Made by a program: the position numbers and the translations under genes
The notes under the pieces: generated by a model
Seen by the model: only the letters and a program-made list of their open reading frames with translations
What the model was told of the DNA's origin: nothing
The model's database searches: none
Assembly: GCA_040285825.1 (NCBI GenBank)
Contig: JAUPSS010000011.1
Coordinates: 496,001-560,000, forward strand
Reading direction: 5' to 3'
From: Eukaryota sp. TZLM1-RC
Taxonomy: Eukaryota; Protista; Metamonada: BaSk clade
Length of the DNA stretch: 64,000 bases
Part shown: one piece after another, positions 15,743 to 57,636 of the stretch
Position numbering within the stretch: the stretch's first letter is position 1
Layout of the letters: every line of letters starts with the position of its first letter

Positions 15743-17062
15743 TTAAAGCTCAATTTTGGGTTGATATGTTGCATCCAATCTACCAACAATTTCTTGTGCC
15801 TCAATATTGTTTTCATCTTTGCTCAGAACAAGTCTCCCATCTATCAAAGCCTCTCTATACATGCCCAAGAGAACCCTTGTCTTGGCTCTGATTACATAAA
15901 CAGGGAGAAGTTTCGGATTAAAGCTTATAGATGAGGAAAATGCCTTTTCAGCGTCAAGAAATCTTCCTTGATTGAACAGATTGACACCAATCGAGTAATG
16001 GACGGTTGCGATCTTGGTATTAATACTCCAATCAGATTTAATTGACACAGCATGATTATAATCAAGCAGAGAGTCCATGAGATTCTGTAGCTTTAAGTGA
16101 ACATCCCCTCTAGATACCAATAGTTTAAAGTTGTTAGGTGCAATTTTAAGTCCAAGATTAAGGTAAACTAATGCTTGTTTGAAGTAGTCGTCTGTGATGA
16201 GAGCATCAGTATGTGATTCAATAACCTCTACAAGTTCCTTATTTACAAATGGTTTAAAATCATCGCTACTGAGCTCTAGTGATGCCTTTAACTCATCTAT
16301 AGCTGATTGAAACATTCCTATGTCCTTGAGAAGTATACCCTTCACAAAATGTGCTCTGACGTGATCAGGGTCGACCTTAATGGCCTCCTCGATCAATACT
16401 AGTCCCTGTTCGTTGTTAACTCCAACCATATCATGTGCTCGGTTGACAAGGTCCTCTAGATCTGCTCGAGATTCTTCTAGTATTTGTTTGGCAAGGTTAT
16501 TATTAGACTTTATTAAGAGAACCTTTTTTGCGTGTGAGACGGAAATATGCTTTTCACCACTGTATAAATGTATCAAAGCTAAAACTAATAAAAAATCAGA
16601 ATCATTTGGCAAATCCAAGGCTTGATAAGTTTTAATGTATTCATCTATACCATCTTTCAATGTTGATGATGGATAAAGTTCAACAAATAATAAAGATAAT
16701 TGAAGTAATCGATGAGAGGTTGGAAAAGCATTGAATGCTTCAGTAGTGAGAGAGAAAGCTTCCTTGTATGCACGCTGCAACAAACAATCTTTGGACAGGA
16801 CTTCATAGCAATGTGCTATTCTGGAACCAACAGAAGGAGTTAACTCTATGTTATGATCTATCGTGTTAAGGCAGGATAATGCAGCTTTGAAGTCAAGTAG
16901 TGTACAGAAAAGTTCCGCTTTGATACAGATAAGATGTGCATTTTGAGGAAGAAAGAAAATAGCTTTGTTTAGATGAACAAGAGCGTCCTCAAATAATCTC
17001 GCATCTATAAGTTTGAGGGCTGCCTCATAATGAAGTTGAAAGCTATTTTCAATGGCATTCAT
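15743..17062 (-). CDS. TPR-repeat protein (TTC16-like)
   Basis: Multiple TPR-like repeats (ALVHLNKAI, AIKVDPDHVRAHFVKG, AEKAFSSSISFNP). Confidence 0.8.
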   Translation of the reverse strand: MNAIENSFQLHYEAALKLIDARLFEDALVHLNKAIFFLPQNAHLICIKAELFCTLLDFKAALSCLNTIDHNIELTPSVGSRIAHCYEVLSKDCLLQRAYKEAFSLTTEAFNAFPTSHRLLQLSLLFVELYPSSTLKDGIDEYIKTYQALDLPNDSDFLLVLALIHLYSGEKHISVSHAKKVLLIKSNNNLAKQILEESRADLEDLVNRAHDMVGVNNEQGLVLIEEAIKVDPDHVRAHFVKGILLKDIGMFQSAIDELKASLELSSDDFKPFVNKELVEVIESHTDALITDDYFKQALVYLNLGLKIAPNNFKLLVSRGDVHLKLQNLMDSLLDYNHAVSIKSDWSINTKIATVHYSIGVNLFNQGRFLDAEKAFSSSISFNPKLLPVYVIRAKTRVLLGMYREALIDGRLVLSKDENNIEAQEIVGRLDATYQPKIEL

Positions 17063-18552
17063 TCTTACAGATGATGTCTATAACAATGAAATAAGTGTCC
17101 TTTTGACAACGATGTAGAGGGACTAAGTTTTTGAGGGTGGAAGATTTTATCCTTGATGCCTGTTTCTTTGAACCTTTGTCAACCTTGGTTCTCTGCAGGT
17201 ATCCTGGTCTATCTCCTCCATTTACATGTGCTTCCATCACTGCCAACATATTCAGCGAAGAATTTCAATCTCTTTTCCACAAACTTTCGCATGATTTACA
17301 CATGGTAAGCCCGTGACGAATAGACATCTCATGCATCTTCCATGGCCTAGGATTTCTGCACCATCGGAATGTTTCAACTGTTTTCTCCGATCTCTTACAG
17401 TTGAAACAGCAGCAACTGGTTCGAAAGTCATCAATTAAAAAGACCTTATAACCAGCCTTTTTCAATAGAATTCTCAAACCTTTTCTTTTGGTAGGTTCTT
17501 TGAATTTCTTGTGTTTTCGTTGTTCCCAGTCTCCGATTCCAATAACTACTTGGCTGGGATCACCAATTACTGATTTGAATCTCTGAATCATTTTTGCCTC
17601 AAATCTTGTGCGATTAATCTCAGCCCACCACCTTAGTTTCCTAAATATCTTTTGATGATAGACTTGACCAACAATACTATTCACAAAATTTCTTTTGTTT
17701 ACTATACTCCATAAATCTATCAAACCTGCAGCTTTTGGAATTGAAATGGGATAATGTTGCTTCCCATTCTGCTACAGATTTAGTCTTGTGATCATTCTTT
17801 CTCAAATTTAATGAGTAATCAATTTCGTGGGGAATATTGATTTCTTGAGGTACTTTTCTTCTTAATACACTAATTGTTCTTTCAGTCATTTAATTAATTA
17901 TACTGCTGTTTAAATCCATCCTTTGTTGTTGCTCTTCAGATGATTGATAATTGGATAGATCAATCACTCTACCAGTAGAGTTACATATTGTGATAAGAGT
18001 GTCATTCCGTATGCTGTCTCTTATTCTTTTGAATTTGGATCTTTTCGACTCAAATCTTCGTTGATTTTGAGTGCACCTGAAATGAACATATTTATCTCTC
18101 TCAGGTTATTTTGAATGAGTCATTCCAGTAGCCAAATTGGCAGAAAAAGAGTAAATCATATTTACATGGATCAGCAGCAGCAAGGGTTATATCTTGAAAT
18201 TGAGAAATGCTAATGTTGGGGTCATCAATACATTTTGCTTTTTCTTTGAATTCTTATGCAGTTACTTTGTATTTTTTCAAATCAATGCTAGATTGAATGA
18301 ATGATACTGCTATTCCATCAGTCTCAATGCTAGTCACGATGCACCTGGAACTTTCTAAATCAATTTCAGTGTTTTAATCTCGTTTATTTTCAAAATGGTG
18401 TCCCCTGAAACAAAAGCAGCAGCTTGATTGTTGCATTGGTAGGAGGACTTTGGACCAAGAATGTCCTTGAATTCGTCAAAGAACAAGTCCAATAGACTTG
18501 TATTGTCAATTCTGATATAGGAGGGAAAACAAGAATTTTTCAAAGGCAGAGT

Positions 18553-21500
18553 ATGAAAGACTTTAAAAAAGACTTTTTGCCTTTGTGTGATGCCCCTGAT
18601 ATTACGCCTGAAAAAGTGCAAAAAAGAAGATATACCTGTTCCAAATGTGGCAAGGTTGGTCATAACATTAGAAAATGTCCTGATATTATTACCGAAAAAA
18701 TGAGACTGAAAACCAATATTTCTATTGTTAATAGTTTGCAAACGCCATCCGAACTAAATCTTCCTCCTGTTCCCAATGTTTCTGCTGATGATGTTAATTA
18801 TGATTTAAATATTGATCAAACTCATTTACCAAAAACTGTTGCTCCTGATCCTACGGATAATGTCTTGAAACATAGTTGTCCTTTTTGCAAAAAGTTCCTC
18901 TCTAATTCTTCTAATGGTCGCCCTCTATTGTTTTGTTATGACTGTCAAACAAGTGATTCTCTTCTTACACCTGTTAAAATTCCTGTAGAGGTGAGTCCTG
19001 CCAGTTCTGTTCCTTTGTCAATGGAAATGCGTTCTTTTTCTTCGCAATTGAAATTAAACAAATGGAACATAACAAGATTTTGGAAATTCTTTGCCAAAAA
19101 GAATAAGAAAAAAATTAATTACAAACCAAAACAGGGAAAAGCTAATTCATCTTTTCAGGCAAGAAAATTGTTTTTGAGAGGTAGATATGGAAGCGGATTA
19201 AAAAATATTTTTTCGGGAAAACTGGCTGATACCAATCTCGAAACTGTTGAAAAATTGAAATCCCTCCATCCAACTGAACATTTTTGCCCCAGTAAGCCTT
19301 CTATTTGTCAATATTGGCTCGAAAATCCATTTCAGGCTCAAGAAGTATTGAATGCCGTTGCTAAATTACCAAAAGGAAAAGCTGCTGGTCCTTCAGGCAT
19401 TTCCTTTGATTTGTTAAAAACTGCCTGTAAAAATGCTCCTGAAATTGTTGAGGATCTTGCTTCTTATTTTCAAAATTTAATGTGTTTAAATTATGTTCCT
19501 CCGCCTGAATTGACTGCTGCCCGTTTAGTTGCTTTAGTTAAACCTGGTAAAGGTGACAAACCTGATGGAGTTAGACCAATTGCCATTGGAGAGTCATTAA
19601 CCAGATTGCTTTCTTCGCTTATTTTTAACAGAATTTCTACTAAAGCAAGGGACTATTTGAAGCCTTTCCAATTTGGTATAAAAACTGTTGAAGGTGCTTC
19701 TGTTGCTTCAATGACTTCAGATGTTTTTTTTAATAGTCAACAACATCAATATATTTTCAATTTGGATTTCAAAAATGCTTTCAATTCTGTGAAACGTAAT
19801 TGTATTTTTGATGTGCTTCTTCATGATTTTCCTGAACTTTCTGCATATTTTTATTTATTTTATGGAAAAAAATCAGACTTAATTTTTGACTCCTTTACCC
19901 TTGAATCTTCTTCTGGTGTGAAACAAGGTGATCCTCTTGGCCCTTTGCTGTTTTGTTTGGCTATTCATAATATTATTAAAATGACACAACAAGATTTCCC
20001 TGATTTGCGTATTGTTGCCTATATGGATGACATTTCTATTATTGGTTCTTTTGAAAGCATTTCTAGGGTTTCTGAAGACATTGCGGCGAAATACAAAGAA
20101 ATTGGTTTAGCTTTAAACCCATCTAAATGTCTCTTGATTGGTAGAGAAAAACAATATTTGATGATTGGTGGAGCTCAGATTCCTTTTATCAATTATGACC
20201 AACAAGCTTTTAAGTTTCTTGGATGTTGGCTTGGCAATTTGGATGAAATTTATTCCCAGTTAAACAATTTATTGGAGAAGTTTGACAAGGATCTTAGTTT
20301 TATTGCTGAATGTGACATTGAGAAACACATCAAATTTTTTATTTTAAAAATTTGTTATTCTGGAAAATTCACTCATATTTTAAGGTCAACTCCCCCTTCG
20401 GTATCTCTCAATTTTTGCAGATCTTTTAACAAACTTCGAGTCAAATTTTTTTCTTCTTTATTAGAAGTAAATGAATCTTTAATTCGAAGTCATGTATTTT
20501 GTTCAGCAGATTTGGGTGGAATTGGATTCACCAAATCTTCGATTCTGTGTAAAGCAGCATTTTTGGGAGGTGGTAAAAATTTTGTATTTGAATTTTTCCA
20601 AAGGTTCCCTTTTGATGTTCATCTGATCAATGGTGAATCAAATTTTTACTTGAATCAACTGCAATTTGAATTAGAAAATTTGCCTAGTGATATCTGGATT
20701 CAGTGTTTTCCTCAAAATGTTCAAGAAATTCCCACTCGATCACTTCCAAATTTACGTTTTTGCTTGAAAAAGCTTCAGCACCATCTGGTTAAATTATATG
20801 AAGGCTTGGATTATGAAGTAAGACTTGGCTTGGCCAAAACTAAAAATCCCGCTTTCGGTAATTTTTTAAAGGATATTCGTGATAGTTCAGCTGCTGCTTT
20901 AGTAACTCAAGTTCCCTCTGTTTATGGACTTTTGTTAAAAGACAATGAATGGCTTCTAAACATGCGTTTTCGTTGTTTTCTGTGGCCAAACAATTTGCCC
21001 AATCATTTAACTTGTAAATGTGGTAAACCTCTTTTGTTTACTCATCTTTTGAACTGTAAACATTTGATTACGTTTAGAAGCAAAGTGCATAATAACGTCA
21101 GGGACCAAATTTATGTAATGTGCAAATCATATCGTGTAGATTCCTTTTTAGAACCGCTGTTATCAAAATTAATTCTTGATGATCCCAATATTGATAGTAC
21201 GCGTTACAACAGAGCTTCTATGGGTCTGACTAGAGGTGATCTAGTTGTTCCTGGTTTAAATGGTAGTTTTACTATTTTGGACGCCATGTCTATTGACCCT
21301 TGTAATTCCTCTAACGAACATTTCATTAACTCGGATGTAAATAATCCTCTTCTTGCAGGCGAAAAATATAAAATTGCTAACTATGCGAAACCCATTTCCT
21401 CGGTTAATGAAAATTCTCATGCCCAATATAATTTATGTCCATTTGTTTTTTCTTTGCTTGGATCTCTAGGTAAGGCTGCTATGGCTTTCCTTGAGGATTT

Positions 21501-21582
21501 TGTTGTAGTTGTAAAGGAAAGAACTGGAAGAATTTTCAATCGTGTTTACTGGCAAAACAGGATTGTATTTTCTATTTTTTAA
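18553..21582 (+). CDS. Retrotransposon ORF: CCHC knuckle, RT, CCHC Zn motif and restriction-like endonuclease
   Basis: CSKCGKVGHNIRKC; KAAGPSG, RPIAIGE, LDFKNAFN, GVKQGDPLGP, AYMDD, FLG; CKC..H..C; RGD..D..EKYK. An extra T near 21580 removes the last ~38 codons, and the ATG lies inside the TSD. Confidence 0.92.
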   Translation: MKDFKKDFLPLCDAPDITPEKVQKRRYTCSKCGKVGHNIRKCPDIITEKMRLKTNISIVNSLQTPSELNLPPVPNVSADDVNYDLNIDQTHLPKTVAPDPTDNVLKHSCPFCKKFLSNSSNGRPLLFCYDCQTSDSLLTPVKIPVEVSPASSVPLSMEMRSFSSQLKLNKWNITRFWKFFAKKNKKKINYKPKQGKANSSFQARKLFLRGRYGSGLKNIFSGKLADTNLETVEKLKSLHPTEHFCPSKPSICQYWLENPFQAQEVLNAVAKLPKGKAAGPSGISFDLLKTACKNAPEIVEDLASYFQNLMCLNYVPPPELTAARLVALVKPGKGDKPDGVRPIAIGESLTRLLSSLIFNRISTKARDYLKPFQFGIKTVEGASVASMTSDVFFNSQQHQYIFNLDFKNAFNSVKRNCIFDVLLHDFPELSAYFYLFYGKKSDLIFDSFTLESSSGVKQGDPLGPLLFCLAIHNIIKMTQQDFPDLRIVAYMDDISIIGSFESISRVSEDIAAKYKEIGLALNPSKCLLIGREKQYLMIGGAQIPFINYDQQAFKFLGCWLGNLDEIYSQLNNLLEKFDKDLSFIAECDIEKHIKFFILKICYSGKFTHILRSTPPSVSLNFCRSFNKLRVKFFSSLLEVNESLIRSHVFCSADLGGIGFTKSSILCKAAFLGGGKNFVFEFFQRFPFDVHLINGESNFYLNQLQFELENLPSDIWIQCFPQNVQEIPTRSLPNLRFCLKKLQHHLVKLYEGLDYEVRLGLAKTKNPAFGNFLKDIRDSSAAALVTQVPSVYGLLLKDNEWLLNMRFRCFLWPNNLPNHLTCKCGKPLLFTHLLNCKHLITFRSKVHNNVRDQIYVMCKSYRVDSFLEPLLSKLILDDPNIDSTRYNRASMGLTRGDLVVPGLNGSFTILDAMSIDPCNSSNEHFINSDVNNPLLAGEKYKIANYAKPISSVNENSHAQYNLCPFVFSLLGSLGKAAMAFLEDFVVVVKERTGRIFNRVYWQNRIVFSIF

Positions 21583-21747
21583 GGGAATGGTGACACTAAT
21601 TTCTGATTCACTATCTTCTTTTGGGAAATTTTCTGAATCTTTGGCGATTAATTGTTTTGATGTAGGGGAGGCAGGTTTTGAGGATGTGGAGTTTTAATTG
21701 TGTATTTCATATTTGTTGTTGAATAAAAATAAATAAGAACAAAAAAA
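18561..21747 (+). mobile_element. Near-complete CRE-type RLE non-LTR retrotransposon F1
   Basis: 13-bp TSD AGAGTATGAAAGA at 18548-18560 and 21748-21760; AATAAA and A-rich tail. Confidence 0.93.
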
Positions 21748-21874: not shown

Positions 21875-22494
21875 TAAGTATTTATTGAACATGTACACTT
21901 AATTAATCTTATTCATAACTAATGGGACGAATATCATTGGACCAAGATTTCCTCTACAAAATCTTGATCTGCTTGCTGTCTAGCTAAAGCTTCTCTCATT
22001 CGATTGAAAAACCGAGGTAATCTATTAATAATGGCAAATTGAATCCGAGAGCGCCATAAAAAGACATCAAATCTTTTCATTGTTTTTTCTTGAACCACTT
22101 TCTGGAAGTCATTCATCACTGCTTCTACTGATAGTCTACCGTTTATCGAAAATGGAAAAGCAATAAAAACTAGTGGTGTATTTCTACCAGCATTAGCCTT
22201 TTCGATATCTTTGTCATATTTTCTATGTTTTTCATTAGCTTTAAATTCAAGAGCACCTACAGGATTCAGTGTTCTTCTGTGAACCAAAGTATCATCTTCA
22301 ACATTGCATGAGACAAAGTCAACAATAGCTTCAGAATTATCAATCCAATCACAGTATACATCACCTCTATCCTCAAAACCAACATTATTCAGAGAAAGTG
22401 TTTCCTTCAGCAGAGGCTTTTTGGTACACGAAATTCTGGCAGTTTGTGCCATATTAAAAACAGAATCATGTGAGCATCATGTGATGAAGAAGGT
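21875..22494 (-). mobile_element. RLE retrotransposon F2 3' fragment nested in Fanzor A1
   Basis: ORF 21934-22452; TSD AATAAGGAATAT at 21863-21874 and 22495-22506. Confidence 0.88.
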
Positions 22495-37187: not shown

Positions 37188-39212
37188 AATTTTCGTGTTG
37201 AATAATTACAAAAACTATCAACTACACAGATACTGAGGTCTTTCATGACCACTCATTCTGGCTTCAGCAATTGCAAATATATTCAGACAAGCCAGCTTAT
37301 TTCTATTGAAAAGCTTTGTTCAGCCCTTGTGCTGATTTTGCAACTCTCACTGTTACAAGCAAATAAACCATGACATTTAGTAACAGGAGTCTTTTTTCTT
37401 ATAGAATCTAAGATTGGTTACCCTCACAAACGTAGTAACCTTTTCAAAACAAACAGGACATTTTGCTGAAGTGAAAGCTTCATTAATCATCAATACTTCA
37501 AAACCATTTCTTTTCAGAAATTGAATACATCTAATAGCATCGAGTAAGTCTCTGATGTCTTAAGTTTTTAGAGCCGCTTTTACCATAATCACCCATTAGC
37601 ATTAATGTGTCTTTTGGGTTGCCAAAATTCTGAACAAGGCATTTTAACAACCAGTTTTCAGTCTGTTGCATGTGAATAAAAGCTTGCATTTTAAAAATGT
37701 TCCACAAGTCAAGACGGTAAAAGTCAATTGTCAAAAAAACTTGCCGAAGTTTGGCACCCACAAAGTTGGAAAAACCTATAAAAGTTCCTGAATTAGCAGC
37801 AAACGTGGATAATTTGGTGTTTGAGTCTTCGAATGTCATTTTGTTAGACTCTATCATTTGGTTCCTGCCGTAATCTACCTCAGTATATTTTGTCGTCCAT
37901 CGTTTTTGTTTTTCATTTATCCTACTTTTCAAAGACCAGGACATCTGAGTCATTCTGAACCATTTGTACTTCTTGTCTTGATTCATCACCCGACTTTTTC
38001 TTTACTGTTCAGTTTCATGTTCAGGCACAATGGCTAATTGTTGATTACCTTTGTACTCCCAAAACACAATAAATCACGTTTTCCAGGATCACAAACAACA
38101 ATTCGTGTGCCTTGAAAAGTAACATCATCAACATCAGTATATAAATCAGAAATACTAGCCTTCTTTTCTGGCTTACATTTCTGACCTTGTAAATCCCGAC
38201 GAATATATTCTACTGCAATATTAAATCCATCCGTGTGGAATATGTATGTTGAATTTAAAAAAATATCTTTTGATTGAACATCTGTTGGTTTAAATCGAGA
38301 ATATTAGACCAAAAGTCAAATTGCTCAGGTGGTTTGAATCTATGAACTTGGCCTTTGTATTGACCATTTTCAATCTCTGATTAGGCAATAAATCGACCAT
38401 CACTGTTTGTCTGTTATTTGTCCATAATGTTCTTGTATCAATAGTAAAATATCCTGAACCTACAATGGTTGACACAGGAGAAATATTATAAGGTTTCTTC
38501 TCTCTATTGGAGATATATTGCACAATTGTAATTGCTGCCTTTGGGAATATTTGATGATCTTTTTCAACAGCGTCTGCAAGAAAATGTATATCCACTGGAA
38601 TTATGTTATCAACTGAATTGTCGCCAGTGACCAAATTCTCAAATTGACAAGTAAATGGCTCAACAAGACCTTCAAAGATGTCTGTAAGTTCATTGTTTCT
38701 TATATCATGTTGTTCACATAAAACGAAAAATTCATCATTAAGAAAGTCTGCACTATTTTCAGGATGATGAAACAAAGAACTCAAGCAATCTTTATCATCA
38801 ACTAAAAACAAGTTTTTGAATTGACGAAGCCTAAATCTATATAGTGAAATAATGGTAGATAATGGCGTTGAGTATCCACCCAGCTTCTGCATTTCTGCTA
38901 ACACATTTTCCACATCTGGTTTGTCAAACAAACATTAATAAAACGATTGATTTGTTTTTCATAATTAATTTCAAATTATTCTCAAAATTGGCAAACATTA
39001 TTGGGGCCATATTCTCAGGTGATCTACTGAAGCCATCAGTTGGAAATCGTGGAAACTGTTCAGGCTTGTGTCTAAGTGATCAAGATAGCTCAATGTTTTC
39101 TTTAACTTTTGTTGCTTAAGGGTAGTTCTTAAAGTATAAACTTCTTCACCATAAACAAAGTCTTCAAAATCCTGTGGAAATGCACTTTTTGTTTTTACCA
39201 CTTTGCGCCCAT
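37188..39212 (-). mobile_element. Fanzor family C, near-full-length frameshifted copy C1 (3' end resumes at 36210-36186)
   Basis: FTIDTRTL, HTDG, IVVCDPGKRDL (RuvC-I), LMGDY, INEAFTSAKCPVC (RuvC-II plus Zn), HGLFAC, FNRNKLACLNI, ERPQYL. Confidence 0.88.
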
Positions 39213-40119: not shown

Positions 40120-43100
40120 TCAAGTTTTCTTGGGACTCGAAATGAGCGGGTACCGAAGATTGACCAACTCTAGGGCATCTTTCTCCTTCAATATGCATTG
40201 AACCTTGTAACTTTTGCAAAGTGCCCTGAGTGTTGATATTGAGGCATTTGATAATTGTTCATTACCATTCCTGGCGGTGGAGATTAAGAAATCAATCATA
40301 TCTGCTTGAATTATCGCATTCCTCCCTTCTGAATGAAGCCCAAAACATTTCAGGACCAATAAAAGAGCCTCGCAAAGAGCAACACCATAGCCATTTATAT
40401 TATAATTATGAGTACATGTTTTAAAAACTGCTGATTCAAAACATAACGAGCAAACCACATCAAATAAACCAAATTCTAGTAAATAAGGAATGGAAAAATC
40501 ATATTTGGCCAGTGATTTGAGAAATATTAGCCCTTGTAATAAAATATCTTCTTCAGTACAATTAAAATCAACAAAAGACTTCCTGGTAAAAATTTCTTTA
40601 AGTACCAAAAGAATTCCACTTTGGATTAAATGCTCAACAGATTGATCAAATCTCAGTAGAGGTTTCAAAACATTAAGGAGATACTTTAATAAAACATAGT
40701 CCTGGCAATTGTTGATACTCTGAATAATAACTTTAGAATATTTTTCATTTAAAAAGAATAAAACGTTAGAGTCCACAGAGAGAAAAGCTTCCAAAACTGA
40801 AAAATAGAATATAAATTCTTTTTGCAAATCATGTTCCATCTCTTGAATTGTCAGTGAATTTTCCTTAAAAAATGAGCATATTTCAGTAATATGAGATTCA
40901 TGTTTAATTTCAAGTTTACGGAAAGGAGAGACAGGATCTTTTCTAACGAGATTGTTAAATTTAGATAACAACGCTTGAAAAACGTCAATGGAAATCAGAA
41001 ATCTATTAATAAATCCCCAGTTAAGAACCTGTAAACGTGACTGCGGTGACTGTGACACGTCAGTAATTACTTCTAATTTAGAATTCAACTCAGTTGTAAG
41101 CAATTCTTTAACATTCTCCACAACATTACACAAATCTTGTTGAGAATCAGCTAAAACACTTATAGTGTTTGATAAAGATTCTTGATTACAATCTGATTCG
41201 GCAACTGATGTCGATAGTTGCTGTAAGGTTGATGATTGGTCACTTAAATTGTCAGAGAGACGTTGAATTTCTGTAGAAACAGTTGCTTTATGGTTTGAAA
41301 ATTGAGTTTTCAATTCCAAAAGTGGATTGATTGTTTCAGAAACCTGGATTTGAAACTCTTCAAATTTGGAAAACAGCTTTAACACCGAGGGAATGATACC
41401 TTCTAGTTCAGATTTTAAACCAACGACATCACCAACTGATTCCCAATCAGATTTGATTGAATCGAAGTTCATACATAGAGAAGAATTACTTTGGCTTAAT
41501 TCGGTCAAAATTTCTGAATTATGAGCGACCTCTGACTCACATTGACTGACACGTTCCCTGAAAGAGGCAAGACCTGACTGAAAAACTTCAAACTGCATTT
41601 TAAGATTCTCAAACGAATCTACACGTTGACCTATCTTGCGAATATTATCACGTAAATTTCGAACTTTTCCACCAACGGTGTTGACGTCATCTTCAAGGAC
41701 GGTCATGCGAGTCTGTAGTAGTTTTGACCTTTCAGAGCTCTTCTCTACTTTGGAAGTGCTGTTGGTTAAATCAGATGTCATCACTTTGAATTGATTGTCA
41801 TGATTAGCAATCGAAGTCAAACAAATTCTGACCTGGTCTTGTAATTTCAGAAGATCTTCCATCACTTTCGATTTAAATTCTGAATCACTGAAAAGATTAT
41901 CGACTTTACCAGAAAGGTAGTCAAAGCTTCTAGTCAATGAGTTTTCTTTTGAGCGGAATTCAGCATCAGAGACATCAACTTCATCAGTCGAAGAAATAGA
42001 ATTCTTGACTATAGGCGATGGATTAACTTCCTCGATTGTAATCGAATTTGATTGTTGATTGGTTTGATTAGAATTTGATTGATTAGCGACAGAACTTCTA
42101 CGACTATTGGTTACTTTGGGTGTTTCAAAAGGAGTTATACATTGTGAACTTTCTACCGAATTTTGATCTTCTATTATGACCTTATCAGAATCTTCTTGCA
42201 TTTCCTTCTCTAAATCATTAAATGCAGCTTCTGTTTCTTTTTTAGAGAATGTTACTGGTGATTGAGAACCTTTTACATAGAGCTCTACTACAGCTGACTT
42301 TCCAAGACTGTCTTTAGGTTTCTGATCTTGTTTTTGACACTTTGGTGATTGAGAACCATTTCCACTACTAGTTTCCCCCCCATTTTGCTCTAAATTTGAA
42401 ATTCGAAACTTTAAATCAGCAATTTCTTCTTTAAAATTCAAGATTTCTTGGCTAACGTGCGTTTTGAAATCTTTTTCCAATGACAAATGATCAACTTTGG
42501 AAGTTAAAGTATTGACAGACTGAACTAATTTGTAAAAGTCTTCTGAATTCTGATCACCAATCAAATTTTGACTGACCTTCCCTTGGTTGACTTTCCCTCT
42601 CAACTCCTGCAACTCTTCCTTCATACTTCCACAACGTTCCTCCATTGCCTTGTCAATAGCTGCAGAGACGATAGAGTCGAGGGACTGGTTTTCAGCTGGT
42701 ACATTGTCTAGTTGGTAGCGTTGAGTTAATACTTCGAACTGACGCACCAGAAAATTTCTGGAATCGAAAGCAATGTAATTAAGTATACGAGCCTGAATGA
42801 CTGGATCAGTGGTGATATCGTCTATTTGAAGAGAGGAGAATCGGGTGAGAAGGGTGACTGAGACGCGTAATGCGAGGGTACGGAGATCTGCATTGGAGCT
42901 CGAGATGTAGTAGGGTAGGTTTAAACGAAGAAGGTTCTTCGCATTAGGTCTGAAGCGAGAAAGACACTTTTCATGTGAAAAAAACTTTTCGAGATTAATC
43001 AGAGCTTTGACAGCTTGGGGAGAGGGAGCAGAGTTGCAGATTTGAAGTATTGATTCTAGAGATTTGTCAATATGATCTTGGGACAAATTGCTTGGAGAAC

Positions 43101-43182
43101 TGAAAGGATCATCAAACGAAGACAGTAAAGAATCGATAGCTTCATCATCACAGAGTCGCAGGGAAGTGACAGGTGTGGACAT
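40120..43182 (-). CDS. Large coiled-coil protein with ARM-like C-terminus
   Basis: 1020-aa ORF with long heptad regions and a helical-repeat-like C-terminus. Confidence 0.8.
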   Translation of the reverse strand: MSTPVTSLRLCDDEAIDSLLSSFDDPFSSPSNLSQDHIDKSLESILQICNSAPSPQAVKALINLEKFFSHEKCLSRFRPNAKNLLRLNLPYYISSSNADLRTLALRVSVTLLTRFSSLQIDDITTDPVIQARILNYIAFDSRNFLVRQFEVLTQRYQLDNVPAENQSLDSIVSAAIDKAMEERCGSMKEELQELRGKVNQGKVSQNLIGDQNSEDFYKLVQSVNTLTSKVDHLSLEKDFKTHVSQEILNFKEEIADLKFRISNLEQNGGETSSGNGSQSPKCQKQDQKPKDSLGKSAVVELYVKGSQSPVTFSKKETEAAFNDLEKEMQEDSDKVIIEDQNSVESSQCITPFETPKVTNSRRSSVANQSNSNQTNQQSNSITIEEVNPSPIVKNSISSTDEVDVSDAEFRSKENSLTRSFDYLSGKVDNLFSDSEFKSKVMEDLLKLQDQVRICLTSIANHDNQFKVMTSDLTNSTSKVEKSSERSKLLQTRMTVLEDDVNTVGGKVRNLRDNIRKIGQRVDSFENLKMQFEVFQSGLASFRERVSQCESEVAHNSEILTELSQSNSSLCMNFDSIKSDWESVGDVVGLKSELEGIIPSVLKLFSKFEEFQIQVSETINPLLELKTQFSNHKATVSTEIQRLSDNLSDQSSTLQQLSTSVAESDCNQESLSNTISVLADSQQDLCNVVENVKELLTTELNSKLEVITDVSQSPQSRLQVLNWGFINRFLISIDVFQALLSKFNNLVRKDPVSPFRKLEIKHESHITEICSFFKENSLTIQEMEHDLQKEFIFYFSVLEAFLSVDSNVLFFLNEKYSKVIIQSINNCQDYVLLKYLLNVLKPLLRFDQSVEHLIQSGILLVLKEIFTRKSFVDFNCTEEDILLQGLIFLKSLAKYDFSIPYLLEFGLFDVVCSLCFESAVFKTCTHNYNINGYGVALCEALLLVLKCFGLHSEGRNAIIQADMIDFLISTARNGNEQLSNASISTLRALCKSYKVQCILKEKDALELVNLRYPLISSPKKT

Positions 43183-44100
43183 CGGCTAATAGCACAAAAA
43201 TGTCAAATAGTAGTAACCCGTTGAGATTACTGGAATATGAAGATGAAATGAATCAAAACTCGAGGTCTTTCATTTCCTTTGAAATACTCATCCACAACAT
43301 GAATCATATCAAGAACAGCATTGACATTACGATTCCATACATATCCACAATTCTTGCAAGTGATTAATCTTTGTCTAAGGACCGTTGGAGTCTTTGCTCT
43401 CCTGTAATGTCTTGGGTTAGGTACTCGTTGCTTCTTTACATTTTCGCCTTATTTCCCCTTGAGTACACATGCCTGATATCTACAACCTGTTCTGTATCCA
43501 TCCAGCAGCAGTAGTCGGAAGTTACGTTTTTTAAACATCTTTCGATAACCAACTTTTTTTGTAGGTGCTTTTTGCCTAAAATTGGTTTGCTTCCAAACAC
43601 CCATCACTAGTGAATCACTAGAATGTTATCTTCTGGGCATCCAAACTTATTTTCAAATTCATTCATCCATTTAGCCTCAAACGCCTCTGTGGCCATGAAT
43701 CTTTGCAGTTTCACAATTCTTTGTTAAAGTCAAAAGCTCCAATATTGAGAGAAAAGTTTAGGAATTCTTCATGATCTAGGGTTTTTTTGAAAATTGTTTT
43801 AATTCTTCTTCCCGTTCCTTTACAGTTTTGTTTTGATAAATTCATGATTCTTTGCCATCCTTATAGAATTTTTGATGGTCTTTGTTTAGAGTTTCTGACG
43901 TGTTGGGCTGACTGTGCCATGATATTTACGTAATTACTAATCCTGATATATCTTATCTCCACAGCATTATGAGGGAAAACTTTGAGCGCACATCTAGTAT
44001 TCATTGACCTCTAAATGGGTGTACATCTAAACATTTAACAACCATTGTTGCAGTCTTTACCACTTGAGTTCAGATATCCAAAGCTGGTTTTCATTTACAG
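43183..44100 (-). mobile_element. Fanzor family B, copy B1 (C-terminal half plus 3' end abutting host ATG 43182)
   Basis: KLQRFMATEAFEAKWMNEFENKFG...KAPTKKVGYRKMFKKRNFRLLLLDGYRT...RVPNPR...LITCKNCGYVWNRNVNAVLDM...ERPR. Confidence 0.85.
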
Positions 44101-44139
44101 TCAAGAATTTTACTTCTGTTTATTTGATTCTTACATTTA

Positions 44140-44716
44140 ATGGGGAAATTCCCTCAAGTACACGATCAATTTTCGCACGGAATTACTACAAAAGCTATCT
44201 ACTACACAGATACTGAGGTCTTTCATCACCACTCATTCTAGTTTCAGCAATTGCAAACATATTCAGAGAAGCCAGCCTATTTCTATTGAAAAAGCTTTGT
44301 CGAGCCTTTGTTACTGTGTTTGCAACTCTCACTATTACAAACTAATAAACCATGACATGTAATAACAGGAGTCTTTTCTCTAATAGAATCTGGGATGTGT
44401 TACTCTCAAAAACGTAGCAACCTTTTCAAAACAAACAGGATATTTTGCTGAAGTGAAAGCTTCATTAATCATCAATACTTCAAAACCATTTCTCTTCAGA
44501 AATTGAATCCATCCAATTCCTGTTGATGTTTCAAATTCTTACAGCCGTTTTTGCCATAATCACCCATTAGAATTAAAGTGTCTTTTGGGTTGCCAAACTG
44601 GTGAACAAGGCTTTTTAACAATCAACTCTCAGTCTTTTGCTTGTGAATAAAAGTCTGCATTTTATGAATGCTCCACAAGTCAAGACTGTAAAAGTCGCTA
44701 CATCTCCATTTCAAGT
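44140..44716 (-). mobile_element. Fanzor family C, C-terminal copy C2
   Basis: High nucleotide similarity to 37190-37725; INEAFTS, FNRNRLASLN. Confidence 0.88.
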
Positions 44717-44730
44717 ACAGATTAAATCTT

Positions 44731-45266
44731 TTTTTTTGATGAAATGAATTTTTATTTTATTCATTCAAGAAATATGAAAACATAAAATACACAATTAAAA
44801 CCTTACATCCTCAAAACCTGCCTCCCCTACATGAAAACAATTAATTGCTAAAGATTCAGAAAATTTCCCAAAAGAAGAGAGTGAATCAGAAATTAGTTTT
44901 ACCATCCCCTTAAAAATAGAAAATACAATCCTGTTTTGCCAGTAAACACGATTGAAAATTCTTCCAGTTCTTTCCTTTACAACTACAACAAAATCTTTAA
45001 GGAAGGCCATATCAGCCTTACCTAGAGATCCAAGCAAAAGAAAAAACAAAGGGACATAAATTATATTGGGCATGAGAATTTTCATTAACCTAGGAAATGG
45101 GTTTCGCATATTTAGCAATTTTACATTTTTCGCCTGCAATAAGAGAATTATTTACATCCGAGTTAATGAGATGTTCCTTAGAAGAAATACAAGGATCAAT
45201 AGACATGGCGTCTAAAATATTAAAACTACCATTTAAATCAGGAACAACTAGATCACCTCTTGTCAG
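44731..45266 (-). mobile_element. RLE retrotransposon F1 3' fragment
   Basis: TSD ACAGATTAAATCTT at 44717-44730 and 45267-45280; poly-T tail on the + strand. Confidence 0.9.
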
Positions 45267-45609
45267 ACAGATTAAATCTTCTTCAAACTAATTATAATTA
45301 ATTATGAAACCCAACAATCGGCATCTAATCCCCAGAAAGGAACTGATACTGTGAGTTGTTTTAAGTGTCTTAAAAAGTGTTGTCGTCATTGTTTTGAAAT
45401 TTATTTTAATGTAGATAAAGTAAAAAAATTTTAAGTACCAAATCAATTCCAATGTATTTATTATGAGATTTTGGAGAATTGAATAAATCAAAAATACTAA
45501 TAATAAACTTGTGTTTTCTACTCTTAGGTGTCGACATATGAATACGCAATACAAAAATATAGGAAATAAATAAATGGTAATAGAAATAATGGTAAAAACA
45601 TGCAGCATG

Positions 45610-45759
45610 GTTGCATGAATTGTGACCTCGTCAGATGTGTTCATGATATTGTTTTTAAGAGTCTGCCATTCTCATTTAAGGAAAAAAGACTCCGATTAAT
45701 TTCATCTTCATCCTCCCAACGAGTTACTACTACTTGATATATCTTTGTGCTGCTAGCCG
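45610..45759 (+). mobile_element. Fanzor family B 3' end remnant abutting ATG 45760
   Basis: TTTCATCTTCATCCTCC..AACGAGTTACTACTACTTGA...TTTGTGCTGCTAGCCG|ATG aligns to the reverse complement of 43183-43256 and 57563-57636. Confidence 0.85.
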
Positions 45760-46239
45760 ATGTCATGTACAGAGCATCATGATCTTATAGCAGCTCTTTT
45801 GTTTGAACTTGTAAGATTCGTCTCGTATGCAACAGTGGTGCCTGATTATGCAGATTCTATTTTACATGAGGAAAACGTCTTTGCTTCTCTTCCAATATCT
45901 TCACCATGTGAGCTATCATGCCGTTGTCTCAAATGTAATAATGAATCTCGCATTGATTCTGGTGATACCCAATCCCCTGAATTACTAGAATTAGTTGGGT
46001 CCAATCCCTGCATTAATCGCTGTACACCTTTTTCGAGGTCCAGATCTATTATTAATCCACATTATGCTTTCAATCCCCTTCCTCCCATTTCAGTCCAAGA
46101 CTTGACCCCATGTCTTGCGGAAAGGATTTCGGAAATATCCCAACTGTCTTTACGTACTATGCAATCAGAATCTTCTAAATTGAAAAAAGGCAATGATAAG
46201 GTCAAATTGAAAAAAAGTAAGAAGAGTAAAACTAGTTAA
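45760..46239 (+). CDS. Hypothetical protein (Cys motif, basic tail)
   Basis: 159-aa ORF with no recognised family. Confidence 0.6.
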   Translation: MSCTEHHDLIAALLFELVRFVSYATVVPDYADSILHEENVFASLPISSPCELSCRCLKCNNESRIDSGDTQSPELLELVGSNPCINRCTPFSRSRSIINPHYAFNPLPPISVQDLTPCLAERISEISQLSLRTMQSESSKLKKGNDKVKLKKSKKSKTS

Positions 46240-52084: not shown

Positions 52085-52680
52085 AAATGTTTTTACTATG
52101 ACTCGAACTGCAAGAATTTCGTGTATCAAAGAACCTTTGCCGGAAGCAACACTGTCATTAAATAATTTTGGCTCTGATGATAGAGGTGATATACACGGTG
52201 ATTGGATTGATCGCTCTGAAGCTGTTGTTGACTTTGTCTCATATATTGTTACAAATGACACTTTGGTGTAAAGGAGAAAGCTTAATCCTGTAAGTGCTCT
52301 TGAATTTAAAGCTGAAGAAAAACATAGAAAATATGACAAATACATCGAAGAAGCTAATGCTGCTAGAAATACACAACTAGTTTCTATTGTTTCCCCTTTT
52401 CTTTAAACGGGACCTATCAGTAGAAGGAGGAACCGTTTTGAATGATTTCCAAAAATTGGTTAAAGAACAAACAATGAAAAGATTTGATATCTTTTAATGG
52501 CCCTCTCGAATTCAATTTGCCATTATTAATAGATTATTTCTGTTTTTCATTCGAATTAGAGAAGCTTTAGCTAGACAGCAAGCAGATCAAGATTTTGTAG
52601 AGGAAATCTTGGTTCAATGATAGTCGTCCCATTAGTTATGAGTTAATTTCATTAAGTGTGCAAGTTTAATAAATACAAAT
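52085..52680 (+). mobile_element. RLE retrotransposon F2 3' fragment, decayed
   Basis: Ends ...QQADQDFVEEILVQ* with the conserved 3'UTR TAGTCGTCCCATTAGTTATG. Confidence 0.85.
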
Positions 52681-52847: not shown

Positions 52848-54360
52848 GGTTCAATTCCAAAAGCTGCAAATTTAATACACTTATGGAGTATAAAGAACAA
52901 AACAAATAAATAAATGGTATTGTTGGCGAAGTCTATCATCAAAAAAATCCTAAGGAAACTGAGCTGGTGGGCTGAGATTAATCGCACAAGATTTGAGGCA
53001 AAGATGATTCAGAGATTCAAATCCGTAATTGGTGATCCATGTCAAGTAGTTATCGGAATCGGAGACTGGGAACAACGAAAACACATGAAATTCAAAGAAC
53101 CTCACAAAGGAAAAGGTTTGAGAATTCTATTTAAAAAAGGCTCGTTATAAGGTCCTTTTGATTGATGACTTTCGAACCAATTGCTGTTGTTTCAACTGTA
53201 AGAGATCGGAGAAAACAGTTGAAACGTATCAATGGTGCAGAAATCCTAAGACATGGAAGAGGCATGAGATGTCTATTCGTCACGGGCTTACCATGTGTAA
53301 ATCATGCGAAAGTTTGTGGAATAGAGATCGAAATGCTTCGCTGAATATGTGGGTGATGATGGAATCACACGTAAATCGTGGAGATAGACCAATATACCTA
53401 CAGAGAGCCAAGGTTGATGAAGGTTCTGAAAAGAAGGTATTAAGAGTATTAAAAACTCAGAACCTCTTCATTGGTGTAAAAGGGCACTTATTTCTTTGTT
53501 ATTTTTTTTATTTAATTTTAATTTTATTCAAAACCTATAAATCAACATCTAAAAAATACATCTCCCCCAAAACAAAAACACTAGATGCAACTCTATCATA
53601 GTGAGATCCAAGAGACAGCAAAGCATCAGAAACCATCTTCAACATCCCTTTAAAAATAGAAAACACAATTCTATTTTGCCAAAACAATCTGTTGAAATTT
53701 CTGCCAGTTCTTCTCTTTACAATCAATTCAAAATCATCCAAAAAACGTAAAGCAGTTGGTGCAAGTGAACCAAAAAGGGAAAATACAAATGGATACAAAT
53801 TGTATTTTGCATGCCGTAGACTGGCCAATTTGGACAAAGGTTCATTGTATTTTTTGAGTTTGAAATTTTCAGCATTTGAAAGTGGATTATGAATTTCAGA
53901 ATTAACAAGCCTTTCATTTGAGGCATTAGAAGGATCAACAGACATTACATCCAATAAAATGAAGCTTCCATCTAATCCAGGTAATATAACATCACCTCTA
54001 TTATTCTTATGAAAATCATCTTCAGCATCAAACAGATTTGACAACAGAGGTTCCAAGAAGGATTCAATTCTATGAGATTTACACATACAATATAACTGGT
54101 CTCTTACAGCATCATGAACCTTGCTTCTAAAAGTAATAAAATGTTTACAATTTAACAAATGAGTAATTGTAATTTCTCGAGAACATTTACAAATTAAATT
54201 ATGAGGTAAATTATCAGGCCAGATAAAGGAACGAAATCTCATGTTCAGAGTCCAAGCAGAATCGGTTAAGAGAGTACCATAAACTTGGGGAATTGTTGTT
54301 ACTAAGGCAGAAGAAGTACTGTCACACATATCTTCTTTGTTATTGACATCATTTGTAAGA
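52848..54360 (+). mobile_element. Fanzor family A, copy A2 (C-terminal part and 3' end, split by F3; abuts NME7 ATG)
   Basis: LSWWAEINRTRF, IGDWEQ, IDDFRTNCCCFNC, WNRDRNASLN. The end continues after the TSD as TTCTTTGTTATTGACATCATTTGTAAGA|ATG. Confidence 0.9.
53504..54332 (-). mobile_element. RLE retrotransposon F3 3' fragment
   Basis: ORF 53535-54329; TSD TTCTTTGTTATT at 53492-53503 and 54333-54344. Confidence 0.92.
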
Positions 54361-55383
54361 ATGACTCATCCAGACCGTCTCACCTTCATTTTACACTACC
54401 ATGATCCCCAAGCGGAACTCAACCGAGTATATAACCTTCTCTTCTTTCCATCTGACAACTCTATCGAAATCCATGACCCCAAGCTTAAACGTATTTTCCT
54501 TCGTCGCATACCCTTCCCCAGTTTATCATTAAACGACTTCATCATTGGCAACTCTGTTGATATTCACTCCCGACAGATGAAAGTTGCTGACTATGGTGAC
54601 TCGTGTACCAGGGACTACCTCACTGCTTCCCAAGAGACTATCACCGTCGTCATCCCCCCTTCAAAGTTTCCTTCTTTCGGAACTATTATTCAATCCTGTC
54701 TTGATGCTAACCTCCGTCCAACCAAACTCCGTTGCTTTTCCTCCTCTTCTTGTAAGTCTCTTGACCGTCTGTCCTCATTATCCAATGAACCTAGTGGAGT
54801 GGTGTGTTTTTTCAAATTAACTGGTAATGATTGTTTAACCAAATGGGCAACTATTTCGTCTTCTTTCTCTTTACCTCCTGTTGATGACTTTTCTACCATT
54901 GAACAAGTCTTTCAATCAGTTGAATATAACCCTTGCCCTGTAGATTCTGAGAATTCCTCCTTGTTGTTAATTAAACCCCATTGTGTCAAGCATCAAAAAT
55001 GGGGCGATTTGATTGGTGACGTCATGAAAAACTTTGCTATTTCAACAATAGGCTCTTTTAATTTCACCAGAGAGCAGGCAGCTGAGTTTCTTGAAGTATA
55101 CAGGGGGGTTTTGAACGAATATGATGGATGGTGTAAAGATTTAAGTTCTGGGATGGTTGTTGCCTGTCATATCAAAGGTGATGATGTTATGATTGTCAAT
55201 CAATTACGTGATTGGGTAGGTCCAGTTGATCCTGAGATTGCTAAACAATTAGCACCAAATTCAATCAGAGCTAGATATGGTAAAAATAGAATATTTAATG
55301 CGGTTCATACCACTGATTTGATCGATGATGGGTCACTAGAGGTTCATTATTTGTTTGAATTTATGTGGAAGTATGGAAATTAA
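54361..55383 (+). CDS. NME7: Nucleoside diphosphate kinase 7 (DM10 plus NDK domains)
   Basis: DM10-like LLFFPSDNSIEIHDPK.KRIFLRR; NDK LLIKPH, APNSIRARYG, NAVHTTD. True ATG is 54361 (the track start is a TTG). Confidence 0.9.
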   Translation: MTHPDRLTFILHYHDPQAELNRVYNLLFFPSDNSIEIHDPKLKRIFLRRIPFPSLSLNDFIIGNSVDIHSRQMKVADYGDSCTRDYLTASQETITVVIPPSKFPSFGTIIQSCLDANLRPTKLRCFSSSSCKSLDRLSSLSNEPSGVVCFFKLTGNDCLTKWATISSSFSLPPVDDFSTIEQVFQSVEYNPCPVDSENSSLLLIKPHCVKHQKWGDLIGDVMKNFAISTIGSFNFTREQAAEFLEVYRGVLNEYDGWCKDLSSGMVVACHIKGDDVMIVNQLRDWVGPVDPEIAKQLAPNSIRARYGKNRIFNAVHTTDLIDDGSLEVHYLFEFMWKYGN

Positions 55384-55450: not shown

Positions 55451-57562
55451 TTAATTGTTTGTTCTGGATATTATAGAATTTTTCACTTTAATTACATGCC
55501 TTAATGAATCAATAGTCATGTTACTGGAATTGGTCTTATTTAAAAGTTCCTTGTTGAAAATGTTCATTGACAGAAATCCCAAAAAACTAACAAAAAGTAA
55601 ACAAATTGAAATAACAAACAACAAAAGAGGATTTAAACCAAATGAAATAATAAATTCTCCAATTGAAGAGCCCTTTAAATGATTTTTAAACTCCGAGAAG
55701 GGCGAAATAGCTTCAAAAGGTCCACAATTATGGTTTAAAAAGAAAGAAAAATAAATAATATTTGCCACCAACAGCCCAGTTACCAAAGAAAAAAGCAAGC
55801 TGAAAATAAAACCAATTGATTCTGTCCTGAAGTGATCTTTAGGTCTTTTTAAAAACACATTTAAATACAATCGATCCCACTTTGTTGTTAAAAAAGCTAA
55901 AATTACTGCAATTACACTTGTAAATGGAGAATAAGGTAATACTAAACAGCAGAGAGCATATTGGTAAAGGACACGTAAGCCAGCATCAGCTACCACGAAT
56001 TCCTGGGTTTTCTCTTGTTTTTGGTCTTTGTTTTGCTCTTTTTTTGACCACCTTTTGATGGAGCTTCTAACAATCGCTATAAACAAAGGAGAGAGCTTTT
56101 CAACAATAAAAACTGTTAGAATGAGATTTGTTAATTGGTTACCAACAAAATCAAGCCCGCAGTCGAACTGAGAGTCAGAATACCTGGAATTTAAAACAGA
56201 AAGATAAGCATATCCAATGTTGCAAATATTAAAAAACCTAAACAAAAATAATCTTTTAATTCTTTTTTGATTAACTTCAGCAGGGTTAGGGTTTGATTCC
56301 AAATAAAGAGTGAACGAAATAATTCTAGGGGACAAAAGGTTCAAAAAAGCAAGAATTAATGAGACTATGACGTTTCCAAGGAAAGAGAGAGCCCCTGACC
56401 ATATTTCTATCACAAACTGTCGAACGACATCAGCATACAAGATAACTAAAAGGATTGTAGCAGCAGTAACGACAGTGTAACCAATCAAAACAACTAAAGC
56501 AATCAACCGTTTGACTTTCAAAGACCAACCTCTGTACACTTCACCAAGCTTCTGTTGCCTGGCTGATTCCTCATTAAGGTTAACCAAAAGTGATTCTGTC
56601 ATCAAGTTCTGTTGAACAGAAGTGGGTTCAGTCCCAGCAATGTTCCAATTCCAACCAAACACTATTGAAGCAAAAGTATATGAATCTGATGAAGTTGAGG
56701 CAGACTTGGCCATGACTTTGTAGTACAAAAGTCCAGAATTTAAAACAAAAAAACCAGAAAATATTATCAACAGAATCATTGTGCCATAAATAAATAACAA
56801 GTAAAGAAATTCCAGAGATGAATTTAATTCAGATAGCTTGAAAAAAACAGGATATGGTCCAATAAAAGGAGCAAACTTACCACCAGAGATTACACTGACT
56901 AACATGGGTAAGGATAGCAACGAGCAGATTAAGAAACAAGAAAACACAAACCTTGAGAATTGGAAATGGAAAGCACAGGTTGTCCCGTGAGATTTCTCGA
57001 CTGAGTAAACGTCACTTGAGAGAAAAGGGAACAATGACGATAGAAAGGTCAAAAAAGAAGTCACTTTTGATCTGATAGAAACCTTATCAACGTTATCAAT
57101 AGGAATACTAAGTTCGCCATCGTCAACCATTGCTTTCCTCAACTCTTCTATTTCTTTAAGCGCTCGTTTCCTTCCATAAGAAAGATTTTCTTTCTGGCTT
57201 TTACTTCTCTTCAGTAAGAGCGGATCTGGGCGGTTAGACTTGGAGGTGGCATCACGAACCAGGGCTTCTTGGTCATTGAGGAGTTCCTTGAGGGCTGAGG
57301 AGTGCCGTTTTTCCTTTTGTACTTTGTTTCTTAGCTTCGTGATGTGTTCTTTGGCAAGAGAAAGAGAGTTTTCGAGTTGGGTGATTCTCTGCTTCATGTC
57401 TGGAACATTCTTTTTAGAGGACGAAGAGGTGAAAGTGGTTGTTGGATCTGCATCAGAGGTAGGCCCTATCTGATTGGGTAGCAATTCAAGTTCAGTAAGA
57501 TCGCTCGGTGTAACATTCGTGGGTTCGGATGTATCAGGAGATATATTGTCAGTGTCTGACAT
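55451..57562 (-). CDS. Transmembrane channel-like (TMC) protein
   Basis: VEKSHG...FQFSRF, LES, CGLDFVGNQL, EF.VAD..LRVLYQ...PYSP, CGPF; multiple TM helices. Confidence 0.8.
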   Translation of the reverse strand: MSDTDNISPDTSEPTNVTPSDLTELELLPNQIGPTSDADPTTTFTSSSSKKNVPDMKQRITQLENSLSLAKEHITKLRNKVQKEKRHSSALKELLNDQEALVRDATSKSNRPDPLLLKRSKSQKENLSYGRKRALKEIEELRKAMVDDGELSIPIDNVDKVSIRSKVTSFLTFLSSLFPFLSSDVYSVEKSHGTTCAFHFQFSRFVFSCFLICSLLSLPMLVSVISGGKFAPFIGPYPVFFKLSELNSSLEFLYLLFIYGTMILLIIFSGFFVLNSGLLYYKVMAKSASTSSDSYTFASIVFGWNWNIAGTEPTSVQQNLMTESLLVNLNEESARQQKLGEVYRGWSLKVKRLIALVVLIGYTVVTAATILLVILYADVVRQFVIEIWSGALSFLGNVIVSLILAFLNLLSPRIISFTLYLESNPNPAEVNQKRIKRLFLFRFFNICNIGYAYLSVLNSRYSDSQFDCGLDFVGNQLTNLILTVFIVEKLSPLFIAIVRSSIKRWSKKEQNKDQKQEKTQEFVVADAGLRVLYQYALCCLVLPYSPFTSVIAVILAFLTTKWDRLYLNVFLKRPKDHFRTESIGFIFSLLFSLVTGLLVANIIYFSFFLNHNCGPFEAISPFSEFKNHLKGSSIGEFIISFGLNPLLLFVISICLLFVSFLGFLSMNIFNKELLNKTNSSNMTIDSLRHVIKVKNSIISRTNN

Positions 57563-57636
57563 CGGCTAGCAGCACAAAAATGTCAAGTAGAAGTAACCCG
57601 TTAAGATTATTGGAGGATGTGGATGAAATGAATCAA
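57563..57636 (-). mobile_element. Solo Fanzor family B 3' end (74 bp) abutting the TMC ATG
   Basis: 64/74 identical, ungapped, to 43183-43256. Confidence 0.9.

Follow-up and report, generated by a model that had tools for sequence, protein, structure and literature searches.

We found that, in the genome of Eukaryota sp. TZLM1-RC, the right ends of mobile elements encoding Fanzor proteins are docked base-precisely on the true start codons of unrelated host genes. TZLM1-RC is a free-living flagellate (Skoliomonas), a skoliomonad metamonad of the BaSk clade (bioRxiv 10.1101/2023.05.03.539051). The window, by which we mean the whole 64-kilobase (kb) stretch of DNA that was analysed, is JAUPSS010000011.1:496001-560000 of assembly GCA_040285825.1. 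It was studied together with ~100 kb more of the same genome (~167 kb in total), comprising five further loci reached through the annotated A-type fragments P0121-P0124 plus P0126. The kind of element is known; its behaviour is new. Full-text literature searches, of incomplete coverage, found no description of start-codon docking by Fanzor or TnpB elements and no paper treating Fanzors and metamonads together, and we could not find this placement rule described for any Fanzor or TnpB element.

Element ends at start codons

Two families, A and B, carry the finding. The sample contains 12 element ends (nine of family A and three of family B); an ATG follows immediately after all 12, and 11 of these ATGs open a real co-oriented gene. 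In the window, the family A end GACATCATYTGTAAGA is followed by ATG at 17060-17078 (-) and 54345-54363 (+), and the family B end TTTGTGCTRYTAGCCG is followed by ATG at 43180-43198 (-), 45744-45762 (+) and 57560-57578 (-). Neither string has a match in shuffled sequence, and a weak B-like string at 29306-29327 was put down to chance. The five window ends are co-oriented with the open reading frames (ORFs) opening at the ATG (439, 340, 1020, 159 and 703 amino acids), all of which are called genes of GCA_040285825.1 with identical starts. A sequence-only reading of the window had proposed that the same terminal base meets the ATG, always co-oriented, at five sites and that the host ORFs are intact; the exact strings, their strands, the empty shuffles and the gene calls bear out both statements.

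The two family A ends of the window precede a TPR-repeat protein and a kinase. The TPR gene (439 amino acids; 15743..17062 (-); Pfam TPR matches and a called gene) begins with an ATG at 17062-17060 that adjoins A1, a family A Fanzor pseudogene (17063..18340 (-)) with a non-coding tail of ~40 nucleotides (nt) ending ...CTGTAAGA. The 5' side of A1 is cut beside a full-length non-LTR (long terminal repeat) retroelement (18553..21733 (+); 1009-amino-acid ORF with RVT_1), which lies head-to-head with the truncated A1. The second host gene encodes an NME7-like nucleoside diphosphate kinase (340 amino acids; 54361..55383 (+); Pfam match and called gene). The upstream part of A2, a C-terminal family A Fanzor pseudogene with a frameshift (52850..53502 (+)), is separated from the last 29 nt of the element (54332..54360 (+); ending ...TTTGTAAGA right before the NME7 ATG) by a 5'-truncated non-LTR retroelement in antisense (53503..54331 (-)) that has an A-rich 3' end and a short flanking duplication of TTCTTTGTTAT. 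Since this retroelement sits in the A2 tail, the similarity between A1 and A2 at first appears to span only ~35 nt; with the insert removed, A2 continues into a Fanzor C-terminus like that of A1.

The three family B ends precede a coiled-coil protein (1020 amino acids; 40120..43182 (-)), a 159-amino-acid protein (45760..46239 (+); called gene, no Pfam domain) and a TMC/anoctamin-like membrane protein (703 amino acids; 55451..57562 (-); called gene). The first ATG adjoins B1, a family B Fanzor C-terminal pseudogene (43183..43760 (-)) with the zinc finger CKNCGYVWNRNVNA and a terminal block at 43183-43256. B2 (45692..45759 (+), with an 8-nt deletion) and B3 (57563..57636 (-)) consist of the terminal block alone. 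The earlier claim that A1, A2 and B1 are continuous with a Fanzor C-terminus also stands, as each reads through, A2 after removal of the inserted retroelement.

Outside the window we found seven more A-type ends, with an ATG after all seven and a real gene start after six; two of them (L004:11753-11782 and L003:1864-1930) came up unsought in flanking sequence of the sampled loci. Copies of the ends thus lie at gene starts in 11 of 12 cases, contrary to the mostly off-gene placement that the sequence-only reading had named as its refutation. Real genes adjoin eight of the nine family A ends, namely the TPR protein, NME7, a 494-amino-acid gene, a galactokinase-like GHMP kinase, a 394-amino-acid gene, a WD40 gene, a DUF3161/SKA1-like gene and a 324-amino-acid gene. 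In NME7, residues 2-88 align with positions 2-88 of the Pfam profile PH_NDK7_N; since this N-terminal PH domain aligns from residue 2, the docked ATG is the ancestral start. In the GHMP kinase gene the annotated start lies 27 codons downstream of the docked ATG, and the ORF opened by the docked ATG carries the galactokinase signature at its residues 7-35.

All Fanzor fragments detected by blastx in the sampled loci are co-oriented with the downstream gene or stacked on a fragment that is, and the sample contains no inverted copy of an A or B end. At locus L002 the element occupies a divergent intergenic spacer except for ~40 nt. Even copies with heavy deletions or invasions keep the terminal 29-88 nt (A2, B2, B3, L003:1864-1930, L004:11753-11782 and L010:13668-13755). 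We found no evidence of a target-site duplication (TSD), as the first 6-12 nt of the host genes recur upstream at chance level only, and no consistent TA at the sampled junctions.

The bases on the host side of the junction are also biased. At family A junctions the host base at +4 is A in seven of nine cases and G in two of nine, and at family B junctions +4/+5 is TC in all three, compared with 22% A and 35% T at +4 in 37 other genes. The host-side motif next to the end is therefore ATGR for family A and ATGTC for family B at 12 of 12 junctions. Both families carry a complementary motif inside the end, (T)TCATT(G) at -28 to -22 in family A and TGACAT at -23 to -18 in family B. An ATG-spanning complement of 5-6 nt to the fixed internal motif is present at nine of 12 junctions versus five of 34 other genes.

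Two further observations concern start-like sequences. ATGAATC opens several sequences after Fanzor tails or captured DNA (L005:20254-20309 (-), L004:10449, L003:1931 and window position 31851), which may be no more than coincidence added to the preference for ATGA. In addition, a 355-nt copy (31497-31853) of part of a neighbouring HATPase-like gene (source 28607-28961, 97.5% identical) overlaps the ATG of a putative 150-amino-acid ORF (31851-32303) by one base. That non-Fanzor DNA, too, is joined to a putative start codon hints at a contribution of the host site, beside that of the element end, to where the joint falls.

Anatomy of the element families

Family A elements are at least 3.6 kb long (the L010 copy) and encode, in order, a Ulp1/C48-like protease, a segment resembling a PolB exonuclease and the Fanzor. 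The Ulp1/C48 match in the 5' part lies at the Pfam cut-off, and the PolB ExoII-like motif (GFNILKxDI) between protease and Fanzor was recognised by eye only; these regions are found at L010:7674-9400, L004:6982-8900 and L003:1-1296. A1 reads IGIGDW ... LIDDFRTSCCCFNC ... CKSCESLWKRD and then a stop, with RuvC-I (IGIGDW), RuvC-II (LIDDFRTS) and CxxC zinc fingers. The Fanzor assignment is supported by a match of PF07282 to the A-family fragment P0121 (28.3 bits vs a cut-off of 26.3) and by a phmmer search with the A1 piece, which returned 622 proteins at E<=1e-10 and reached proteins of 600-750 amino acids with DUF8286 and PF07282 at E=1e-45; the best full-length ones have 655-744 amino acids. 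The family consensus retains IGIGDW, LIDEFRTS and WNRDRNA, and most copies keep the third RuvC aspartate, yet stops or frameshifts occur in every copy. Among the matches listed, the nearest full-length relatives of the family A Fanzor are P0125 and P0127 (52-55% identity over the C-terminal part). These are encoded on metagenomic contigs (L006 and L007) with a compact gene order, one beside a PolB gene, and are not from the TZLM1-RC genome. As a guess, the two contigs are giant-virus-like and the family A lineage may have a viral source.

Copies of family A are 85-92% alike, with many stops and frameshifts, and are truncated at differing 5' points. Their tree is a star, each copy lying 3-10% from a common node, which indicates a single burst of independent insertions. 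The last four bases of the ends vary (AAGA, GAGA, AATA, AACA and TTCA) and track weakly supported sub-lineages; because they follow the sub-lineages, these bases belong to the element. Taken together, the star tree and the family-specific host bias argue for many independent, sequence-directed insertions.

In all three family B copies similarity spans only ~74-78 nt upstream of the ATG. B1 runs into a Fanzor C-terminus whose stop lies ~45 nt before the end, and B2 and B3 are solo terminal blocks of ~70-78 nt. The 78-nt boundary that B2 and B3 share shows no retroelement duplication on its far side. We rejected the idea that the B block is the first exon of a divergent gene, suggested by ATG TCA AAT on the opposite strand in B1 and B3, since B2 lacks this ATG and has the 8-nt deletion.

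Family C is represented in the window by two fragments. One (44168..44732 (-); FNRNRLASLNM) is stacked upstream of B1, has a tail ending ...GGGAATTTCCC and is truncated where it adjoins the 3' part of a non-LTR retroelement (44721..45268 (-)). The other (37188..38303 (-)) has its tail broken by a retroelement fragment (36200-37187 (+)) that lies upstream of an RTE1/TMEM222-like gene (35696-36133 (-)). A tail with the same ending lies ~55 nt from an annotated ATG in L005, and family C tails are stacked upstream of an A remnant in L003, as they are upstream of B1 in the window. Asparagine replaces the third RuvC aspartate (RuvC-III) in independent copies of families B and C (WNRN and FNRN; 43183-43330, 44195-44332 and 37224-37330); these families are possibly a nuclease-altered lineage. 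A family C relative is annotated as a 787-amino-acid protein with DNA_pol_B_exo1 and DUF8286. This relative and the ExoII-like motif of family A suggest an exonuclease-Fanzor fusion. A candidate family D, upstream of a HAD gene, was set aside: it is recognised by neither Pfam nor blastx and ends ~300 nt before the ATG. Every copy of families A, B and C that we saw is a pseudogene or a fragment, so present-day activity of these elements is doubtful.

How the ends may have reached the start codons

As the reading that fits best, we propose targeted, orientation-specific and sequence-directed DNA insertion at start-codon motifs, with later dependence of the host on the element end, and we consider this proposal to have somewhat less than an even chance of being correct. 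Under this proposal a burst of independent, oriented integrations would have made the copies, and the target would be a short motif containing the start codon, ATGR for family A or ATGTC for family B, complementary to a 5-6-nt motif located 20-28 nt inside the element end. The lack of terminal inverted repeats and of a TSD gives the geometry of single-strand HUH-type elements, which land beside a short motif. A motif of 4-5 nt cannot alone explain true starts at 11 of 12 ends, and hence a second determinant, linked to where transcription units begin, must also act. Other metamonads have short mRNA leaders; if leaders are equally short here, DNA melted at the transcription start is a candidate for this determinant. 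Insertion would cut the gene off from its old upstream DNA, and the last 30-90 nt of the element would then supply the proximal promoter or leader. Such a role may be why the terminal piece is retained while the rest of the element is truncated, frameshifted and invaded by retroelements. Retention of the terminal 29-88 nt and the filling of the L002 spacer are consistent with this dependence.

If these Fanzors work like characterised ones, the omegaRNA would take the initial ~16-20 nt of the host's coding sequence as its guide, and such a guide could drive homing into an empty allele. Overall, the sequence-only interpretation is partly supported: the blocks are 3' ends of Fanzor elements at true host starts, and the replacement of promoter and 5' untranslated region and the first-codon guide that it proposed are candidate consequences. 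A bolder version of the proposal, which we hold only tentatively and think less probable than the insertion model itself, is that a Fanzor lineage integrates at start codons by base-pairing an ATG motif with its own end, probably on melted DNA, and donates a portable promoter that makes it both harmless and irremovable, with the first host codons as omegaRNA guide and homing at essential genes.

Several points weigh against targeted insertion as proposed here. The family A end at L004:10448 has only a 46-codon ORF behind its ATG, and family C ends stop ~52-55 nt short of the ATG instead of meeting it. The boundary of the junction is ambiguous, as the ATG, or the ATG with 1-2 further nt, could be owned by the element or be a duplicated target. 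No intact left end is definable in the sampled copies, and because of this the target site or its duplication is not directly visible. The last 35 nt of the long A copies show no extra conservation (identity 0.87 vs ~0.9 elsewhere), and the A tail folds no better than shuffled sequence (z-score +1.6) with no stable hairpin predicted. No transposase was found for these elements, the ORFs of family A matching Peptidase_C48 and Fanzor only; a partner transposase may act in trans. Finally, the additional loci were picked through annotated Fanzor fragments and form a small, non-random sample.

It is unlikely, in our view, that survivorship accounts for the pattern, that is, that insertion took place at random or beside any ATGR or ATGTC and only copies at start codons, having become indispensable as new promoters, escaped deletion. 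As this explanation expects, the genome is compact, what has been kept is exactly the gene-adjacent part of each element, the copies are old, with 3-10% divergence from the node they share, and one end (L004:10448) does lie off-gene. However, base composition predicts several hundred ATGA sites on the two strands of 64 kb, and only about one-fifth of ~25 gene starts carry ATGA, so that start codons should make up a few percent of neutral sites and not 11 of 12. Element copies of 3.3-3.6 kb, useless to the host, persist at several loci, which indicates that deletion is too slow to have erased every intergenic insertion of the burst, and deletion cannot create the identical end base found each time. 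Survivorship alone seems too weak.

We regard RNA-mediated joining as quite improbable. Here a reverse transcriptase copying a near-leaderless host mRNA would reach its 5' end (the ATG) and switch to a Fanzor or omegaRNA transcript at its 3' end, and the chimeric complementary DNA would convert the locus. Abundant non-LTR retroelements in the window, the constant 3' ends and variable 5' truncations of the copies, and the one-strand stack of 3'-intact, 5'-truncated units at 40120-45268 (retroelement, family C, B1, host) are what such a process would leave. The junctions also fall where mRNAs with very short leaders would be expected to begin, and the short complementarity at the joint could be switch microhomology. 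The hosts themselves argue otherwise: none of ten host genes has a poly(A) tract directly 3' or the flanks of a retrocopy, and NME7 and TMC keep their native tail-to-tail arrangement, 67 nt apart. Moreover, copies of up to at least 3.6 kb include the 5' coding part of the element, and the last four element bases follow weak sub-lineages instead of varying freely.

The elements might instead lie within a 5' untranslated region intron, introner-like or IStron-like, and be spliced out so that a far-upstream host promoter still serves the gene. This would account for the 3' splice-site-like TTGTTATAG 16 nt before the ATG in family A and TTTTTGTGCTGCTAG 3 nt before it in family B, given the ...CTNAY..ATAG ends of native introns here. 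Some copies beside intact genes have lost the AG (L005 and the minus strand of L004), no conserved 5' splice site can be assigned, L002 leaves ~40 nt between the element and the ATG of its divergent neighbour, and the flush fit with the ATG goes unexplained; we consider splicing very improbable. Least credible of all is that these are domesticated regulators, nuclease-dead Fanzors that would use a guide taken from the flank to bind where the neighbouring gene begins and control its transcription, like bacterial TldR/Cas12f-like factors: the RuvC-III asparagine of families B and C and the co-orientation of every element with its downstream gene fit this idea, but all copies examined carry stops, frameshifts or truncations, remnants of 29-78 nt are too small for a scaffold RNA plus protein, and family A mostly keeps the aspartate.

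Genomic setting, known systems and significance

The window is rich in other repeats. At least two families of non-LTR retroelement (RVT_1, with a C-terminal Cys-rich or endonuclease-like region) are present, mostly as 5'-truncated copies, at 18553-21733, 59807-61890, 9233-10568, 44721-45268, 53503-54331, 50552-51210 and 36200-37187. Their insertion into Fanzor tails is recurrent (A2, L010 and the family C copy at 37188). A pogo/Tc5-like DDE_1 transposase ORF (335 amino acids; 49326-50333 (-)) is not visibly connected with the Fanzor ends. Five copies of a 600-900-nt repeat are present (61912-62805, 63107-64000, 12630-13215, 21876-22491 and 52088-52676), the first two of which form an 894-nt inverted pair (95%); the repeat contains a 265-amino-acid ORF without a Pfam match and is often found right after the 3' end of a non-LTR element. 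A tandem duplication at 25479-26196 (unit of ~360 nt, 95-99% identical) lies just upstream of the M18 aminopeptidase gene region. The M18 peptidase of the window shares just 48-50% identity with those of the sister strains GEM-RC1 and TZLM3-RCL, and the orthologous M18 loci of these strains lack synteny with the window and showed a single small Fanzor fragment.

Like Fanzor1 and TnpB (OMEGA) systems, the elements have a RuvC-split nuclease, a zinc-finger C-terminus and a conserved non-coding 3' tail running to the right end, and by analogy would take their guide from the flank. The prevailing view of TnpB and Fanzor elements is that a transposase sets where they land and that the flank guide serves for return. 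Known ones have not been reported to dock at start codons; here, in addition, Ulp1-like and exonuclease-like segments are attached to the protein, and every copy seen is inactivated. The asymmetric ends, the lack of a TSD and the oriented insertion beside a motif of 2-5 nt recall HUH elements (insertion sequence (IS) families IS200/IS605 and IS91, and Helitrons), among which IS608 recognises its target through base pairs that this forms with a motif inside the element end. Unlike those, the present elements have no HUH/Rep gene, subterminal hairpin or CTRR end that we could find, and their specificity for genuine start codons exceeds any short motif. They also differ from DNA transposons with terminal inverted repeats (Tc1/mariner/pogo), as the ends have no inverted repeat and the junction no consistent TA.

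Position-specific retrotransposons offer another comparison. The insertion sites are Pol III starts for Ty3, Pol II promoters for Tf1 and spliced-leader genes for CRE/SLACS, and placement is likewise relative to the start of a transcription unit and not set by sequence alone. Those are retroelements with an integrase or endonuclease, whereas here the insertion is of DNA type and has base-level precision on coding start codons. Bacterial IS elements with outward promoters, IStrons and introners are tolerated in front of or inside genes through their own expression signals or by removing themselves from RNA, which are candidate mechanisms here as well, although the host in our case is eukaryotic and the junction lies at the ATG.

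If targeted insertion is true, base-precise landing where unrelated genes have their start codons would add a rule of target choice not known before for DNA transposons and would amount to natural, wholesale promoter replacement in a compact eukaryotic genome. It would also provide a system for studying the recognition of gene beginnings by a mobile element. Each predicted guide RNA would match the first codons of its host gene, which would bear on both selfish homing and the regulatory use of RNA-guided proteins.

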